Positions 55,099 through 63,640 of a DNA stretch of 64,000 bases are shown in pieces. The translations under genes were made by a program, and so were the position numbers. Each line of letters opens with the position of its first letter. Within the stretch, counting starts at the first letter, position 1. Below the pieces are notes generated by a model. The model was not told the DNA's origin, did no database searches, and worked only from the letters and a program-made list of their open reading frames with translations. Source of the DNA: Pelomyxa schiedti (taxonomy: Eukaryota; Protista; Evosea); the NCBI GenBank assembly GCA_020536535.1, contig JAHLWZ010000808.1, forward strand, positions 66,493 to 130,492, in the 5' to 3' direction.

Positions 55099-58000
55099 TT
55101 ATGAGAGGAATACAGGCGCGCTTATACTAGAGGCTATGTACTCAAATTCAGACTTTAGAGCAACACCATCAGCCCCACAGCAGAAAGTCCCCTCAGCACA
55201 TTCCGCGAGCCGGTTCAACCGGGCGGAATCCTTCGGAGTTGTGCCAAAGCCCAGTACATAAACCGGTACTCCTGGGAATTCTCTGTGGAGTTCTGTCATC
55301 TCGTGGTCACCGTTCTCGCACTCCCCATCAGACATGAACAGCAAGACAGGCTCGTGGGTTCCAAATCCACCGGCTTTGAGAATTTCGTGGCATTGCACAA
55401 TGCCTGCAGCGAAGTTGGTGCCACCACGTGGGTTCGCATTCCTTGGTAGGGAAGAGGTCAAATCGGGAGTGAGTTGGACCTGCCCCAGCCTAACACTTGC
55501 GCTGTTGGAGTATCCAACAACTGATATTATGTCAGAACAAGGAGTACGCAGCTGTGAACACTGGTTGATCCTATCTTTAGCAAATGCAGCTACTGCTTCG
55601 AGTAGCTGAAGCCATCGCTTGCCACACATTGAACCAGATTCATCCAAGCACATGACGACGAAGCGCGGTGGTGGGTTGGCAATGTTTGATCCAAGTCTTG
55701 CAAGCTGCATTATCCTGTTTTGAAGGTCTCGTTTTGGAGCTTCACCACCGTCAAACGAGAATAGTGCTTTGACAAATTCGTCAGTATTGCTATGCAGTAT
55801 TTCAGCTTCTTCGACTTCTTGCATAAGGACTGCAAGAGACTTGTTGTATTCTGACTGTTGCCTTGATCTAAGACTGGCATAATCTCCCCCATTTATCATT
55901 GCGGATATTTCAGTATCAGTGAAGCTCCAGTCTTCCCTAAGACTTTCCGAACATAAAAAGAGTTTGTAGTTCCCTTGGTGACCTTGCCGCGCTGTCCTTC
56001 CACGTATTTGAATCTCCTCTGAGATAGACGCGGAGAGAAAAGTTTGTATGACCAATACACCCCCTTTAGTATCCACTTCTTTGTAAGATTTGAAATCGAT
56101 CCCGCGGCCAAAACTTCTAGGTAGTAATGTAACAGCCCCAGGTTTTGATGCTTGAGAAATCAAATTGTCTTTGTACTCTGACTCCTCCACAAGAACATTA
56201 TACCCAAGTGTTATGTTCTGTGCATTCGAGGATAAAAAGGTTCTGTAGGACTCTAATGCAACAACATTTTCAAAAAAAATTAGAACGGCACGGCCTTTTG
56301 TTTGCGCATCAGCAGCAAGGCAAGATATTTCATAAAAGTGATTGTGCCTGTCGGGTAAGATTTTTATGTCATTGATGGGCCTGAAGTCAAGCCTGGAAGG
56401 GCCGTAAATGGATGGCGCATAGGAAAGAGTATTCACTTTATATTTCTTTAGAAGCTCAAGTTCTTTATCGCACAGAGTATCTAGGGTGCCTGTAACACCA
56501 GAAATAATAGCATACCGCGAAGGCAGCTTTGCATAAGAAAAGGAACCACAAATAATTGAAAAGCCCACTGCAGCCTTTACAGCCTCTTCAGGCAAGGTTT
56601 GATTTGAAAGCTCGCTCATGTATGCGAAAGTAGTTTTATGAGCAAAATAGGTAGAGTAATCATAGGCCATAGAAATTTTCTGTGTTTTGTATCCAATTTT
56701 TCCCTTTATACGATCAACATGGTATGGGGGACCTGAGCGAAAGTTCTGTGCATCAGCAACCATTTGGCAAATTTGGCAATCAAAGAGAGGCTTAAAATCG
56801 GGCATTTTGGTAACCAGGGTTCGATAACACGTTTGTTGTTGTACTTTGCGTGCACTAAAATGTGGATCAGAATAATGATCCCACACAAACTTAATTAGTT
56901 CATAGCATTCAGGTTGTGTCAGTAAGGCAGCTGGCATATAGGTGCCCCCTAAGAAATTGTCACTGAAGAACACATCAACTTCGTCAATCAATAGTACTCG
57001 CTTCCGCGTCGGTGTGGCAATTGGTCTACAAGCAGTAGAATTGTTCAAGAAACTTGTCACTCGATCCCTTACATTTCCTTGTGCATTGATGATTTTTTCA
57101 CAAAGTGCATTGACTGTAGAATATGAAATTCTTTCTCGTGTGCGAAAAATTTCAAACAGGAAATTGAAGGCTTGGCTGTCACGAGAACTTAAATACTCAG
57201 AATATGAAACCACATCCACATCATAGCCAAGAATGGCAAAGAGAGTAGCGGTAACTCCCAACACGACTGATTTGCCTTCTCCTGTACCAATTTGAATGAA
57301 GTGACTTCTAGGAGTACACAATGACTTGTCATGGCTAAGAAGTTGGAGAATTGCCACTATCTGAACACTGTGGGGTTTTCTAAGAAACTCGATTTGTGTG
57401 AAAGTTTGACTTCTATTGTTGAGAGTCCAAAGAGAAAATATGTATGCCATAACAATAGGCAAACGAGATGGATCTCTTGGAAGTGTTGTAGAAATTGCTA
57501 AAGCTTCTGATTTCAGATGTGTAAGATCCATGAATAAATTCTGCTTAACAAGGGAGTTGTATTTGGACTCAAACTTCTCGAAGACAGATTTTAGCTCAGG
57601 CCATTTAATTCCCGTTTTCGCTGACCAACTCTCCGAGCCAAGTAAGCCGAGAAGAGGACCTTTCATTTGTTGTGTCTTAAACTGTGAAATTGTATGATCG
57701 ATTCCTTGGTGTGCTATTTGCGCTGACATTATCTTGTTTCGAAGCCATTCAAACTCGGCATTTTCTGAAAGAATCTGCGTTCCAGTAATTCCAGAGGTCT
57801 CCAGTTCTCCAGCCAGTCTCGTTTCTACTTCTTGGTCGTTATTATTTTTCCTTATGAACTCACTAATTGTGACTTCAATTTGCGCTTTTAGTTCCTTTTC
57901 AATGGAGGGGATTTTTTCTGCAACGCCACGAATATTACACAGAAGCTGTGCCATACTTATTGGATCATTTTCTTGTTTCGTGAGTGCAATCTTAGATTGA

Positions 58001-61000
58001 ATACTTGAGAAAACATGCTTCTTCACGGTGTTTGCCGGGTTAACACCTACAAATGAGCACAGGCAAGCGCTTCTATCGCATTTCAGGAGCACACCGGCCA
58101 CAACTTCGAGCTTTTCCGTGTCCCAGGCCTTAATTGCCTGCTGCTCGATGTCGGAAAATTGTTTTCCAAGGATTTCTATGGGGTCAAATAGAACTTGGAT
58201 TTGTGGTGAAATTGAGTGCAATTTCCTGGCATCCAGTTGCTTTCGGGAGAGCTCTTCCACGACATCATATCGCTCAGATTTAAGCGCCTCTCCAAATTCA
58301 CGTTGAATTGAACACAAAGCCTGATTGGCGAGATCTACTCCCTCTTCAAAGGAAAAGAACTTTGCTTGCATTTGAAGGTGTTCAACAATCTTTGACAAAA
58401 TCTCCTGGAGAAGGCCCAAGGACTGCAAAAAGCGGAGATGATTTCCCACTGCTAAAAGGTCACGGTGTGTAAGGGCAGATTTGAAGCTGAGTTCAACTTT
58501 ATGACTTGCCTCGGCAGATAGTTTCACCAAGGAAGTTCCTTTTTCTGCTTGCGCCTTTATAAACTCCGCAAATTCCCGTGGAATTTTGGGTGTGGTGACT
58601 TCAGGGGGTGGCTGAGGTACAGAACTCCGAGAAAATTGTTTCAAAGCATGATGGTACGCACAATACATGTTATTGAAGATATAACTGTATATTTCTGCTT
58701 GGGATGATTTAACACTCTCTGGAGCCATTTCTTCAAGTGCCTTGCTTATGCAAAGACTTCGTTTTACTTGCTGTGCGTCAACTGACTGAAGAAATAAAAC
58801 GAGGGGTTTGAGTTCAACTTCCTTCTGTAGGATAGTGAAAGCTTGAAAGACATCGGCCATTTGTGGACTGAATTCTTCATTTACTTGGATTGATTTTAGA
58901 ACAGAATTTAACTTGGTTTCTAAGGTTGCCGCTATCACTTGGAGGGTCTCTTCAAAAAAATGTGTGTCACACTCTAGAAGGTGCAATTTCCTTTCGACAC
59001 TGTGATAGTTCTGTTGCTGGCACTGTGAGAAAATTTCTTTTTGTAATTGTTGCTTTCTCTGAAGAATTTTTTCTCGAATGACTTTTGCCTTAGTCAACAC
59101 AGAACCAGAGAGCTCTGAATGAAGGTCTGATACTAATAATTCCACTTCCTCAAAGGATGAAGGTGCCTCTTCCATAATCGCTTTGGACAGTGATGGGTCG
59201 TGTTCTCCAGTTGATTTGCTGTAATACCCTTTCAGAAGCTGATCGAAGTAATTTCTGATTTCTGCCGTAATAGAGAACGTGCAACTGTGAGACGTGTCAA
59301 AGTTGTGCTTCGAGTTCTCAAAAAGGGCATTGACTCTGCTGGAATCAATATAGGGCCGCTGCCTAAGAGCAGGACGCAACGTTTTCTCTATCAATTGTTG
59401 CAGTTTTGTGTCAAATGTGATATCAAGTTGATCAAGAAGACTCGTTGTATGTGGGTCTAGAAGACCACTCAACTTATTCTTAAACCCAAGTAAATGGTCT
59501 TGAGCGGAGGCAGCAGAAACAAGTTCCCCTACAAAATCTGAGGAAAAACAGGGAAGAGGGGAAAATACCTCTTTCAAACATGGCATTTATCTTTTTAACT
59601 GCCAGTGAAATGTATGTATTGAGAACCTGCTGGTGATGTTCCTTCTCCGTCGCAATCGCTTCAGTGTCATATTTAAGCTTGTGGAGGCACTCAACTGAAG
59701 ACTCCAGATTCATAAAGCATTTCTTAATTTTCAATTCTCTCCTTTGTTCTAGCGGGTCCCAAGAGTCGAGCATAGACTCCAGTTCCCCAAGCAAGTTTTC
59801 TTTAACAAAATTCGCAATAACATATTGAAGGGTGTTGATTTGGTCAGGGGGGTATAGGGAAATGATTCTTTCAAGTTCTGCAAATCGGCTGTGGGTAAGT
59901 GCCTCATTGACCTCGGTTGTAACCCCATGAACTCGTTTAGAGAGTTCAGCACTAGAGGTGGACACTATGGACACTATCTCAGGTATAAATTCGAATAAAA
60001 CTCGCGAGCCCTTCAATAATTCCAAATTGGTGCTTGCTGTCTGGATAGGAACTTCGGAGTTAACTATCTCATCGCGGAGCATAGCGCAAGTATGCGTAAC
60101 CCTTTTGATTGCCCTACGGAAGTCTTCCTCAGAATTCAATCTTTTCAGGTTGGTACAATTGTAAAACACTGTTAACTCCGCATATACTTCTTTAAATAGG
60201 GAGCAACCCGATTGGCATCTTTCACATAAGGAAACAAGTTCCCTGTAGTGAGTGTCTAAGTAACGCTTAGCAAGAAGTTCTAGAGTTTCAATTGTTCTCT
60301 GTAGCTCTTCATTATTGAAGTTCTGAATTCTGCCACAGATTTCGGAATGTATTACGTCAAGACGTTGTAAAGAGGAAGCAATAGAGGAAGGCTCAGGCGT
60401 ACCAGTTGTGGGGCTGGCAGGTAATTGTGTGAGTTCCTCACAAAGTGTATGGATCAATACTTCCACGCTATTTTTACATTCACCAAAGATCTCTGGGATA
60501 CTAGTCTGTTGTAGACTCGCCATACTCTCAAGTTTCTGTAAATTTTGAGCTACTTTTGTATAAAGGCTCCGTTTCCAACTTGACTCAATATCACCTTTCA
60601 GCTTTTTTGCCTCGTCTGTAAGAGATGCAACTATTTGCTCACAAGAAATGGAAATTCTTTTGCCTATATAGTCATCTAGCCACAGTGCCTGCTTAAGTGA
60701 GCCCAAGAGAGTGTCAACTTTGTAATAGTCTATATTTGGGTAGACCAAAAGAGCTTTTATTTCTTCCAGTACTCTTTCCGGAAGTGCGAAAAAAGCATAA
60801 GCTGCGCGATCAAGTCTAGGGGAAATGTTGTGAGCTAGCTCAGCATCTAGTGTACAAATCTTTTCTATTTGAAGGAATAATAATCTGAATCTGTCCGGTA
60901 CAGATTTCTGGCTGGCAAGAGTGCCTTCAGCATCGGAAAGAAGGGACAGGCAAAATTGGTTCACAACACTATAACAATGCTTTCCAATCTCTTGTATATT

Positions 61001-63034
61001 CAGACTTTCCAGGTAAGACTGAGTTTTTTTACTCTTTCTGAGAAGACTAATGATGGAGATGGCACAATAAACAGTACCTGAAGCACCTGCAGTTGGAAGC
61101 TCATCAATAGCTGCTTGGCACTGATGCACAAGGTTTGCGAATAGTTGTGCATAGGAATCGAATATTTCTGTAAAGCGGTGCTGCTCAAAATTGCCCAGTA
61201 CTTTAGAAGACTCGGAAAGAACAGCAAGGGTAACTTCAATATCCTCAATGGAAAAAGGAAAAGTCATGCCAGTAGTTGGTTTCAATGTATATAGGGTCGC
61301 ATTTGGCCTACTTTGGCGCACAGTATCTAAGTTCTCCTTTACCCATACCATAAGGTCCTCCATTGGGATGATTTTTTTTTGTACATTTTCCCAAACTTGG
61401 TTTAAAAAACTATCGGCAAATCTCTTCATCAACAAACCTGCTAAAGAGGTATCCAGTGCTAACATGAAATCGAGTTGGCGTTTAACTTCAATGAGACCAC
61501 TACAAACAAGTACTGGTAAATCTTTTTCTTTGGTTGTAACATAGTCTGCAATACTCCGCGTTAGTTTTTCTTTGAGTCCTTCAGGAGTATCAATGCTATC
61601 AGTGAAAATCTTAGGCAAGCGAGTTCTCCACAGGCACTCAACCAGTGAATGGAAATCTTTCACATATTGGCAGGAATCGGGACTAACAGCTTGAGCCATC
61701 AAAATCTGATTCATGGAGTTCCAACAGTGACCAGAGAGGCTTTGATACTCAGTGCGTAATTTATCTTCAAACTGAGAAAGATGGCCATTTGTGTACTCGC
61801 CAGTGTATGGATTCAGACTCACTAAATTATCAATTAAAGTTGAAATGTCACTGAAACTTTTGTCAGATCTTTGTTGGAGTGCAAATTCAAAGCCCTTCTT
61901 CATCTTGGCAAGGAATTCAGTCAATTCTTTGTTAGCTTTACAGGCGAGAGTTGTTTTCAGGCTCATTGAACTTGGAATTTTTTGTGTCAGTTTAATAGCC
62001 TCTGTGACTTCTCTGAGTGAAGCACCGTCTGGAGGATTCACTATGAACACTCGTCTCGAATTTTTTGGGGCATCATCCTCTGAGGCAGCTTCCAATGTCT
62101 CTGACATATCGTTCACCAATAGCTCTAGTAGCTCGTGTTCATCCGTGTCAGCAGGAAATGTACTTTCAATTTGCAACAAATGTGGAAGTATGCCATCAAT
62201 ACCCTCAGAAGTTTTCGTGACGAAGAAAAGCATAGAATTTTTCCACGACTTGTCACCGAATAACTTAGTAACCATCGATATCAGGTCTTTTGCTCCTTCG
62301 CCTCTCAATTCGGTGAGAGATGTAGCAGTGAGAACTAAGATAGGTAACAAGTTCTGACAAGCCTGTACACACATCCTAAGACCCACCATATTAGCCAAGT
62401 CAACGATATATCCACTAGTGTCGCTAAACCCCGCACTGTCCACGACCATTGTATCTGGTAACCTAGGAAGTGGAGCACTCTCAATATACCGTGTTTGTGA
62501 GCTTGCTGCATGTCCCACCTGATGTTAACTGGTTAGGTTGATGTTTGCTGGAAGTTTTTCGCCAAACCGGAAAGTCTTTGTCAATTGATGGCAGCAGAAC
62601 ACGCATCTTGCTGGTCTTAGAACCGCATGCAATTGTTATCCGTTTCTTCTCGAGAGGGTGCCCAAGCAAAAAATGAGCACTTAATGACTTGCCTGTGATT
62701 GCACCCCGTCAGTGTCGAGGGCGAACATGGGAAAAAACCAAAAGCGACAACCAGAAGCATCTGGTGTCAAGGGCAAACGTGAAAAAGAAAGAAACGAACC
62801 TGCGCTGGTGGGACCCATCAAGAGAACGATGGTCTTTCCCGCCACCTCGGACGGAGATGTATTGGCCTGGCACAGCTTTAACAGCTGCCCCAACGTCTCA
62901 ATCACGCTGTCCAGGTCGTCACTTGGTTGTTCCATAATCGCATTTGCTCCTGCGGGGGTCGAAGAGTACGCCGTCGTACTAGCCGTAGTCGTGGGGCTGG
63001 AAGATACAACAGTCTGTGCGGGCTCGTTTGCCAT
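55099..63034 (-). CDS. Giant (~2580 aa) P-loop GTPase - helical region - SecA-like SF2 ATPase - vWA fusion protein
   Basis: GPTSAGKS and DSAGFSDT (GTPase); GTGEGKS, SEYLSSRD, LIDEVD, SGVTGT, FGRGIDF, QIRGRTARQG (SecA motifs); DESGSM, GGTNF, FMSDG (vWA MIDAS); introns 62693-62799, 62519-62567, 59538-59568 give one frame. Confidence 0.88.
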
Positions 63035-63640
63035 GTTGCAACAAAGAGGAAATATGCAACACGGTTTTTCTTTTTTGGTAAACCAACCTTCCTTGAACAT
63101 GCTTTTTGTATTGTGGAGTAGATCCCAAGTTGGGGGACTTTTCTGGAGTTCAAGGGGACTAGTCTCGAGTCGAATGAACAGAGACTGTGGATGGGGAAAC
63201 TGTTATCCCCTACAAGAGCTGAGACGGATCCTGGGGAGGACGGTGACATCACACTTTCGCAGATCCGGCGTGCTCAGAGTCTGCTGTGAGGAGTGATGGG
63301 CGAAGGATTAAGGGAATCTTGGTGTGATGATTGGGCGCCAAGTTGGCCAACTAATTATGGCCATTCACGGAACCAGCGAGTTCAAGCTAAACCCCCTCTG
63401 TATCGTGTAAATAGTTAAGACAAAGTTGTGATATAAAACATCAAACACACATGAGGACAACAACACTATTCAGCCCACAACATCCCTCACCCACACCACG
63501 TATCTTACACTGCACTTATTGCACCCCAAAAGTAAAGTGAGATTAATAACAGCACCCCTTAAGTCCTCTATCTCACAGCCTTTGGTGATTCTAACAGATT
63601 TAATTTGCCCTAGCAACTGCACGAAAAGAGCACCCGAACA

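Follow-up and report, generated by a model that had tools for sequence, protein, structure and literature searches.

The stretch of Pelomyxa schiedti DNA analyzed here (64,000 nucleotides of contig JAHLWZ010000808.1, termed the window) carries on its minus strand a series of long ORFs, in which an earlier note had recognized a GTPase, a SecA-type motor and a vWA domain. The locus raises the question of whether these ORFs form a single genuine gene and, if so, what kind of protein it encodes, to which family the protein belongs and what it may do.

Gene structure and expression

The four minus-strand ORF pieces, extending from 63034 to 55099, join into one frame via GT..AG introns, and together they make up a genuine nuclear gene of P. 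schiedti that is transcribed. The exons and introns, all on the minus strand, are as follows.

62800..63034, minus strand: exon 1, start ATG at 63034, encoding an N-terminal helix, GPTSA and the first base of the next glycine; aligns with the GxTGAGKT of homologues
62693..62799, minus strand: intron 1, 107 nt, GT..AG, phase 1; its removal restores GPTSAGKS
62568..62692, minus strand: exon 2, the KS of the P-loop, helix 1 and a beta-hairpin, assigned from sequence and homologue alignment
62519..62567, minus strand: intron 2, 49 nt, GT..AG, phase 0
59569..62518, minus strand: exon 3, the remaining G domain (switch I SSQT; DSAG, 62440-62429; TKTS, 62218-62207) and the first half of the spacer
59529..59568, minus strand: intron 3, 40 nt, GT..AG, supported by a contig of run X4 and NCBI model P0001
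55099..59528, minus strand: exon 4, the second half of the spacer, the SecA-like motor, the vWA domain and the stop codon

A second possible start, an in-frame ATG, is located upstream at 63100. Introns 1 and 2 rest on the alignment with homologues: the spliced G domain is collinear with 12 of them, the first junction reading GPTSA-G-KS and the second DKDFP-VGHAASSQT, compared with the homologue consensus IGxxxxSxT (IGHGxxSxT). If left unspliced, intron 2 leads to a stop codon on read-through (ORF 62481-62669). No contig covers 62444-63200, and none that skips these two introns was found in four runs. Intron 3 is precisely defined by a 1,802-nt contig of run X4, a run not on record as RNA, which omits exactly positions 59568-59529. 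The identical junction (MFER-G-ELVS) is present in the NCBI protein P0001, in which the exons were located by means of their concatenated translations, an X standing for each of the two split codons. Searches employed either exon-wise references or homologues as queries.

Since intron 3 comprises 40 nt, the protein consists of 2,579 rather than 2,582 amino acids. Thus, the single joined frame proposed earlier was correct, as were the introns of 107 and 49 nt, while the third intron of 31 nt (with an acceptor 9 nt upstream of the supported one) and the resulting length of 2583 codons were not. The X4 contig crosses the junction near 59550, so that both large ORFs lie on one molecule. Short strand-switching contigs in runs X1 and X2 resemble artefacts of the assembly graph or of whole-genome amplification and were not counted as joints.

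The public NCBI model (2,436 aa, annotated as “helicase carboxy-terminal domain protein”) lacks the first two exons and thus the P-loop. This omission, the small number of introns (3, versus a genome mean of 7.43 per gene; PMC8887013) and the occurrence of bacterial relatives as single ORFs could be taken to indicate that two separate genes meet near 59550, that the contig is a bacterial contaminant or that the gene was acquired horizontally and is dead. Such an artefact is very unlikely in view of the spliced contig across the junction, the three canonical introns, the absence of in-frame stops over 7.7 kb, the preservation of every catalytic motif and the identity of the nearest relatives, which are transcripts from Archamoebae and other Amoebozoa.

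Modular architecture of the protein

The product of the gene is a soluble, presumably cytosolic multi-NTPase of four parts: G domain, spacer, SecA-derived motor and vWA domain. No transmembrane segments were found in the 2,579-aa protein. The three recognizable domains and their order, as described in the earlier note, were borne out by Pfam, sequence motifs and fold comparison.

61919..62914, minus strand: TRAFAC G domain, GIMAP/Toc/dynamin-like, spanning exons 1-3 (homologue alignments, models, fold searches)
57469..61918, minus strand: spacer, ∼1,480 aa, no recognizable domain, weak collinear similarity to homologues
55924..57468, minus strand: SecA-type two-RecA motor (NBD1, insert, NBD2) (Pfam, motifs, PDB/Foldseek, model)
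56515..56961, minus strand: ∼150-aa insert where SecA carries its preprotein cross-linking domain (PPXD); predominantly helical when modelled, no PPXD similarity detected
55693..55917, minus strand: pair of scaffold-like helices behind NBD2, one of 41 residues followed by a return helix (model, structural alignment)
55102..55683, minus strand: vWA domain with intact MIDAS (DESGS, 55644-55630; GGTNF; SDGE)

In bacteria and plastids, SecA drives protein export, and its PPXD serves as the polypeptide clamp. In the Pelomyxa protein the motor occupies residues 1,790-2,380, with Walker A at residue 1851. The motifs GTGEGKS (Walker A, 57288-57268), DEVD (56985-56974), SGVTGT, GRGIDF and QIRGRTARQG were all found, at the coordinates reported earlier, and the ATPase motifs are intact. 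Across 46 relatives, 25 columns do not vary; Walker A, DEVD, TGT and the arginines of motif VI are among them. Pfam SecA_DEAD matched above its cut-off (5.1e-10; 39.5 bits versus 24.6). A match of Tox-PLDMTX over the Walker A region (E 0.067; 13.7 bits versus a cut-off of 26.1) was dismissed as noise.

The database name of the protein implies a different role for the motor, namely that of a giant SF2 helicase or translocase under GTPase regulation that acts on nucleic acid, as an RNA or DNA sensor or remodeller. The SecA motor is itself of the DEAD-like SF2 fold, DEAD-box helicases align with Z-scores of 21-22 over ∼320 residues, some of the relatives match Pfam Helicase_C or DEAD, and the PPXD clamp is not recognizably conserved, so that nucleic acid or another substrate is possible. 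Nevertheless, this reading appears rather improbable. The PDB sequence search with the motor returned SecA chains only, and with the motor model (pLDDT 87.8) the top 36 Foldseek matches were all SecA chains (E down to 8e-20), the first helicase following at 2e-7. In VIA, SecA reached a Z-score of 30.7 with 513 residues aligned, compared with 22.5 and 319 for eIF4A, and the isolated SecA motor 3bxz reached 26.9. The SecA-specific YLSxRD signature and a scaffold-like helix after NBD2 are retained, and neither DEAD nor Helicase_C of Pfam matched the Pelomyxa protein. The motor therefore groups with SecA rather than with ordinary RNA helicases.

With SecA and SecA2 the motor thus shares the DEAD-like two-RecA core (TGEGKS, YLSxRD, DEVD, TGT, GRGxD, QxRGRxxRQG), an insert at the PPXD site, comparable to the PPXD in size, and a long helix after NBD2, and SecA is its best structural match, at 20-22% identity. 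The set of SecA features is, however, not as full as had been stated. In contrast to SecA and SecA2, the protein has no detectable PPXD and no wing domain, C-terminal linker or zinc finger, its motor lies between a GTPase-spacer region and a vWA domain, and nothing points to an association with a membrane or channel. The insert did not match PF01043 (SecA_PP_bind), and in hhalign the clade's insert aligned to PPXD with a probability of less than 1%; more SecA-like bacterial giants reached 98.9% in this comparison, and Pfam PF01043 was found there too. The earlier denial of a C-terminal scaffold holds only in part: the wing domain is missing, but a short pair of scaffold-like helices (H530-570 and H576-592 of the model) is present. 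Structural alignments extend to SecA chain residues 738-756; in the PDB sequence search, no similarity to SecA was found after NBD2. Pfam SecA_SW did not match, and only ∼80 residues separate NBD2 from the vWA domain.

A true SecA-type translocase, docking on a SecY- or Sec61-like channel of an organelle or symbiont membrane, would be in keeping with the intact motifs of NBD1 and NBD2 and with the prokaryotic endosymbionts that live in Pelomyxa (PMC10579272). It is nonetheless improbable in the extreme. The NCBIfam SecA models scored 32-64 bits versus cut-offs of 725-1,493 (the best, 64.3 versus 862), the insert lacks PPXD similarity, the interval before the vWA domain is too short for a wing domain, a transmembrane segment is absent and 1,850 residues of other domains precede the motor. 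The motor is of SecA descent, but the protein is not a SecA translocase.

The P-loop GTPase recognized earlier at the N-terminus is a G domain. Its G1 (GPTSAGKS, split by intron 1), switch I (SSQT) and G3 (DSAG), aligned against 60 relatives, match near-invariant columns of the family. At the G4 position the Pelomyxa copy carries TKTS, of which the threonine is near-invariant family-wide and the following aspartate is present in some relatives only; lacking the aspartate that usually reads guanine, the Pelomyxa copy is of uncertain nucleotide specificity. Pfam AIG1 and MMR_HSR1 did not match this copy and scored at or below threshold in relatives. Since a sequence-profile search of the PDB yielded mostly P-loop-only matches, fold comparison was needed; because three exons contribute to the Pelomyxa domain, the homologue P0002 (39% identical) was used to model fold and dimer. 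The P0002 model (pLDDT 93.5) resembled most closely GIMAP7, Fzo1, Toc34, MxA and BDLP (Foldseek: GIMAP7, 3e-5; Toc34, 1e-4), with TM-scores of only 0.3-0.4. Modelled as a homodimer with GTP, P0002 gave an ipSAE of 0.76 versus 0.00 for the best control, a mark that 21 of 30 solved homodimers and none of 23 monomers attained, although the predictor may have memorized solved dimers of GIMAP or dynamin. The predicted interface covers the P-loop and the switch regions. The domain thus resembles GIMAP/AIG1, Toc34/159 and mitofusin/BDLP/dynamin-type GTPases in fold, G1, switch I threonine, G3 and a predicted dimer across the nucleotide site, and differs from them in its low TM-scores, its TKTS at G4 and the lack of a membrane anchor.

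At the C-terminus, the vWA domain with intact MIDAS was confirmed by Pfam VWA_2 (7.9e-9; 36.5 bits versus 27) and by Z-scores of 20-21 to known vWA structures. Domains of this type are partners of remodelling ATPases, as in midasin and MoxR/RavA-ViaA, in which a grip is combined with a motor. The Pelomyxa protein would follow a similar logic, a MIDAS-intact vWA domain and a large ATPase being joined here in one polypeptide. The likeness is one of analogy, since the ATPase is SF2/SecA-like and not AAA+, and homology is limited to the vWA fold.

The spacer evolves fast. Pfam, NCBIfam and two ESM-Atlas feature searches with its ∼1,480 aa yielded nothing usable; GTPase-like ESM-Atlas rows derive from the G-domain part of exon 3. 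Over the middle region, P0011, P0012 and P0015 are collinear with the Pelomyxa protein, and the final 250 aa before the motor are conserved throughout the family.

Distribution and phylogeny of the family

The Pelomyxa protein is a member of a large uncharacterized family, in which the spacing of G domain and motor is conserved. The family search yielded 283 relatives. Those of eukaryotes occur in Amoebozoa, Hexamita, ciliates, Reticulomyxa, diatoms and bdelloid rotifers, and the four-part architecture recurs in other eukaryotes. The bacterial relatives are single ORFs of giant size, carried by Legionellales, Chlamydiae, Wolbachia and further intracellular bacteria; nearly all of the 128 bacterial loci belong to intracellular lineages. 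The P-loop precedes the SecA-type Walker A by ∼1,780 aa in the Pelomyxa gene, by 1,700-1,900 aa in eukaryotic or unassigned members and by 1,900-2,080 aa in several of the bacterial ORFs examined. The vWA tail was observed only in eukaryotic or unassigned members and in none of the sampled bacterial ORFs. No informative Pfam domains were found in the N-terminal extensions of ten longer relatives. Viral matches were restricted to four distant ones in IMG/VR, and a viral origin was rejected.

Among the relatives, a Mastigella eilhardi transcript stands closest, with 47% identity in the motor (clade SH-aLRT 99). The motors of the Pelomyxa protein and of giant SecA-like proteins from intracellular bacteria (Legionellales, Chlamydiae, Wolbachia, Rickettsiales, Amoebophilaceae) form one clade with an SH-aLRT of 100. 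Several of these giants also share the N-terminal G domain and its spacing; they differ in having no introns and, in those sampled, no C-terminal vWA domain. In a tree rooted on SecA, the eukaryote-bearing clade is nested among the bacterial giants, and one member of the close clade shares a 2.9-Mb bacterial contig with a canonical secA. In view of this nesting, and of the single ORFs of intracellular bacteria that combine GTPase, spacer and motor, it is doubtful that the motor was repurposed in a eukaryote.

A full-text literature search revealed no functional study of the family, in agreement with the earlier statement that no function was known for the four-part architecture. There were passing mentions only, of “SecA-like helicase-related domains” in Amoebophilus effectors (PMC3482391) and of Legionella fallonii lfa2470 as a eukaryote-like protein (PMC4256840).

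Proposed mechanism and its implications

A GTP-gated, dimerizing, ATP-driven remodelling machine that participates in host-symbiont conflict is plausible. On binding GTP, the G domains would dimerize head to head, as those of GIMAP, septin and dynamin-type GTPases do, and two motors would thereby be brought together at a target. The MIDAS of the vWA domain may grip an acidic residue on a protein ligand, while the SecA-like clamp would use ATP to pull on a polymer or to remodel it, a polypeptide being the most probable one. The phyletic pattern and the domain analogies suggest conflict or control between the eukaryotic cell and intracellular bacteria as the most likely setting. Taken jointly, a genuine gene, a four-part protein, its family, a GTP-dimerized and ATP-driven remodeller and eukaryote-bacterium conflict provide the best explanation of the locus, which we hold with moderate confidence. 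A more specific and distinctly tentative proposal is that the family represents a cell-autonomous immune or symbiont-control machine of eukaryotes. Dimerized through GTP, it would assemble on an intracellular bacterium or the vacuole around it; a surface protein gripped by the vWA domain would then be pulled out or unfolded by the motor, and the bacterial copies would serve as effectors or decoys in this arms race.

The locus thus reveals a motor of clear SecA descent without the translocase-specific parts, set in a soluble giant protein between a predicted dimerizing GTPase and a putative vWA grip. The GTPase-motor design recurs in hundreds of protist and rotifer genes and in intracellular bacteria, and, at the level of annotation, the public gene model misses the GTPase P-loop. 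If the motor still handles polypeptides, the protein would represent a remodelling machine for proteins that descends from SecA and is distinct from the AAA+ unfoldases. If the proposed conflict is real, protist innate immunity would gain a large family, and so would the effector sets of Legionella-, Chlamydia- and Wolbachia-like bacteria. Should the immune or symbiont-control proposal prove true, a SecA-derived motor would have been exchanged between hosts and their intracellular bacteria.

Exon-intron structure of the gene

The gene is composed of four ORF pieces on the minus strand, which can be linked by three GT..AG introns read from the sequence.

62681-63100, minus strand, ORF piece
62481-62669, minus strand, ORF piece
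59480-62518, minus strand, ORF piece
55099-59586, minus strand, ORF piece
62799-62693, minus strand, intron 1 (107 nt, phase 1); removal restores the P-loop GPTSA-G-KS
62567-62519, minus strand, intron 2 (49 nt, phase 0); removal connects ...DKDFP with VGHAASSQT
59568-59529, minus strand, intron 3 (40 nt, GT..AG); skipped in a contig of sequencing run X4, with the same junction in P0001, the NCBI protein model of the gene

The single frame proposed in the earlier note was upheld, as were its first two introns, whose junctions reproduce the uninterrupted GxTGAGKT ... IGxxxxSxT ... DxPG of 12 full-length homologues. Its 31-nt intron 3, on the other hand, was ruled out: the X4 contig (1,802 nt) skips 40 nt, the plus-strand ends of which (CT..AC) represent GT..AG on the gene strand, and P0001 carries the same junction (MFER-G-ELVS). 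Since both use the 40-nt intron, the spliced product comprises 2,579 aa (78+1+41+983+1+1475) and not 2583 codons.

Both large ORFs are carried on one spliced molecule in the X4 contig, which spans the junction near 59550 where a split into two transcripts had been considered. Run X4 is not recorded as RNA; BioProject PRJNA672820 includes five Smart-seq2 single-cell transcriptome libraries alongside amplified DNA (PMC8887013), and a frame-restoring 40-nt GT..AG skip is the pattern that cDNA would give. Run X4 yielded no contig over 62444-63200, and the support for introns 1 and 2 therefore comes entirely from homology. Contigs of ∼50 nt from two other runs, X1 and X2 (window 59803-60008 and 62490-62806), were rejected as splice joints, as each links nearby sites on opposite strands; they look like assembly-graph tips or whole-genome-amplification chimeras.

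P0001 (2,436 aa, named 'helicase carboxy-terminal domain protein [Pelomyxa schiedti]') begins at the Met of DTMVVDSAG and thus lacks the P-loop. An alternative in-frame ATG is located at 63100, 22 codons upstream of the start chosen in the earlier note (MFKEGWFTKKEKPCCIFPLCCN-MANEP...; window 63035-63100), and the 5' end lies ∼1 kb from the end of C808 (window 64000), the contig of the P. schiedti assembly from which the window comes. With three introns in 7.9 kb (window 55099-63034), the gene is intron-poor relative to the genome mean of 7.43 introns per gene (PMC8887013). All searches employed exon-wise references or homologues as queries; for the local comparison with P0001, exon translations were concatenated, with X at split codons.

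Modular composition of the encoded protein

The N-terminal P-loop GTPase was confirmed. Once GPTSAGKS is restored, the protein keeps the near-invariant family residues (P-loop G/G/K, SxT, DxxG, DxxG, N and T); its G4 site, TKTS, contains no Asp, so that guanine specificity of this copy is not assured. With a profile covering the 325 N-terminal positions, 7,039 cluster representatives were matched at E<=1e-3, of which 559 reached E<=1e-30, and SecA motifs occurred 1,700-1,900 aa downstream in 37 of the 144 proteins newly fetched from the best 150 profile matches. Among sequence profiles, MMR_HSR1, AIG1, RsgA, septin and GIMAP gave only threshold-level matches to the G domain.

Because the G domain is split over three exons, residues 1-330 of the homologue P0002 (39% identical) were modelled instead (pLDDT 93.5). 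The best Foldseek matches of this model were GIMAP7, Fzo1/mitofusin, Toc34, MxA and BDLP (E 3e-5 to 1e-3, TM 0.3-0.4). Two copies modelled with GTP gave an ipSAE of 0.76 (best control, 0.00), a value attained in 21 of 30 solved homodimers and in none of 23 monomers. At least 83% of the contacts agreed among three runs, partner pLDDT was at least 86, and the interface comprised the P-loop, switch I and the G3/G4 regions. The prediction on this homologue supports dimerisation of the G domains across the nucleotide site, although the score may reflect memory of solved relatives.

In the spacer that links the G domain to the motor (∼1,480 aa), nothing was detected in Pfam, NCBIfam or Atlas searches, and no hydrophobic segment was found. 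Its similarity to the homologues is weak, yet collinear, and the final 250 aa are kept even in bacterial members.

The motor is recognised by SecA_DEAD of Pfam (5.1e-10), with P-loop_SecA slightly below its cut-off (26.5 bits) and the NCBIfam SecA models (32-64 bits) far under theirs. All 23 PDB sequences retrieved with it by phmmer were SecA or SecA2. Among 46 aligned relatives, 25 columns are invariant, including TGEGK, the L..D of YLSxRD, DE.D, G..GTL, RG.D and Q..GR..R....G. When residues 1,791-2,579, modelled with AlphaFold (pLDDT 87.8), were compared by Foldseek, 36 SecA chains came first (8e-20 to 2e-10), ahead of vWA domains. A grouping with ordinary RNA helicases was not borne out, since the first helicase, Dbp5 (2e-7), ranked after the SecA chains, and in VIA-align eIF4A (Z 22.5, 319 aligned) fell below SecA 6itc_A (Z 30.7, 513 aligned, rmsd 5.2), SecA 2ibm_B (Z 30.0, 431 aligned, rmsd 2.9) and the isolated SecA motor 3bxz (Z 26.9, 337 aligned). 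The alignments to the larger SecA structures exceed those to 3bxz or eIF4A, so the superposition on SecA takes in ∼100-190 residues outside the RecA pair.

The earlier description of a full SecA set without C-terminal scaffold requires adjustment on both counts. The ATPase motifs are present, and SecA heads the phmmer, Foldseek and VIA-align results. In contrast to SecA, the protein has no wing domain, as the gap between NBD2 and vWA is only ∼80 residues in the model. A 150-aa insert follows DEVD at the position of the PPXD, but unlike that of SecA, the insert of this clade shows no PPXD similarity by hhalign (probability <1%). The same test finds PPXD in the more SecA-like bacterial giants (98.9%), and Pfam agrees there and for a giant ORF on P. 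schiedti contig C730. Past NBD2, the model contains a helix of 41 residues and then a return helix, with alignments extending to SecA residues 738-756; on this modelling the SecA scaffold seems to be partly retained. The motor is SecA-derived, yet the protein is not a SecA.

The C-terminal vWA also proved as described, with VWA_2 and VWA above threshold in Pfam, Z of 20-21 against vWA structures and an intact MIDAS (DESGS, GGTNF, SDGE). A vWA of this type was found in 33 of the 120 best homologues and in none of the sampled bacterial giant ORFs. The closest vWA relatives in the P. schiedti genome (assembly G000, GCA_020536535.1) are C-terminal domains, 39-43% identical, of 690-800-aa ORFs.

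C804:44649-45233, vWA-bearing ORF L007
C804:29848-30417, vWA-bearing ORF L008
C500:19317-19853, vWA-bearing ORF L009
C1357, vWA-bearing ORF L005

Two of the three scanned with Pfam had an N-terminal HSP70 match, L007 over the cut-off of 20.6 (24.5 bits) and L009 under it (14.7 bits); L005 had none. Judging from these sequences, the vWA module seems common to more than one P. schiedti gene family.

Descent and distribution of the family

By motor sequence, a transcript of Mastigella eilhardi is closest (47% identity); it forms a clade with the gene and a Pelomyxa paralogue on contig C1034 (SH-aLRT 99). Among the Amoebozoa, transcripts of Endostelium, Pyxidicula and Thecamoeba are further relatives with a vWA. 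With such relatives, contamination was rejected as the source, and the gene is an inherited amoebozoan gene. The paralogues and shared domain order sought after the earlier note were both found: P. schiedti paralogues reside on C1034, C262 (two) and C730, and the spacing from P-loop to motor recurs in relatives.

In total, a motor-vWA query matched 283 proteins, the named members including 26 from bdelloid rotifers and 11 from Hexamita inflata, together with dictyostelids, Reticulomyxa, Tetrahymena, Symbiodinium, Cylindrotheca and Arcella. A bacterial scan (one genome per species) disclosed 128 loci, nearly all in intracellular lineages (Legionellales, Coxiellaceae, Francisella, Chlamydiae, Wolbachia, Rickettsiales, Holosporaceae, Midichloriaceae and Amoebophilaceae/Cardinium). 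These relatives are encoded by single ORFs, of 1,000-4,400 aa in most cases; several carry a P-loop that precedes the motor by 1,900-2,080 aa, with G domains that match exon 3. Canonical secA and one member of the close clade share a single 2.9-Mb contig.

In a maximum-likelihood tree of 120 rows that was built quickly under LG+G4, with SH-aLRT as the sole support measure and three canonical SecA as the root, canonical SecA was separate, followed by a grade of bacterial giants. Within this grade, the gene fell in a long-stemmed clade (support 100) of 38 eukaryotic or unnamed and 22 bacterial rows. The topology is consistent with a design that arose in bacteria and was exchanged later with eukaryotes, the direction of transfer being uncertain owing to sampling, rooting and possible MAG contamination. 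Rather than a SecA motor repurposed in a eukaryote, as earlier proposed, the gene was probably inherited from a design also present in intracellular bacteria.

The C730 paralogue grouped apart from the gene, with giants of Francisella and Thiotrichales MAGs.

G000:C730:6441-7508, SecA-like giant ORF L013 (3,326 aa); SecA_DEAD 1e-42, PPXD PF01043 34.8 bits

It is a second kind of SecA-like giant, either acquired separately or lying on a bacterial contig in the assembly.

The Wolbachia endosymbiont of Tribolium confusum carries two SecA-like giant ORFs head to tail (L032:5334-9878 and 9882 onward; 1,515 and 3,911 aa), one in the clade of the gene and the other in the more SecA-like bacterial grade.

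Proposed role

No functional study of the giant GTPase-SecA-like family was found in the literature, passing mentions only. Giant actinobacterial toxins contain SecA-like ATPase domains (PMC8195603), and lfa2470 (SecA DEAD-like) of L. fallonii has been counted among eukaryote-like proteins (PMC4256840). The gene is a further member of this unstudied, widespread family. From anatomy and distribution, we favour a mechanism in which the G domains would form a GTP-dependent dimer, the vWA would serve as the grip on a target and the SecA-like motor would pull on a polypeptide at the expense of ATP, in what may be a setting of host-bacterium conflict.
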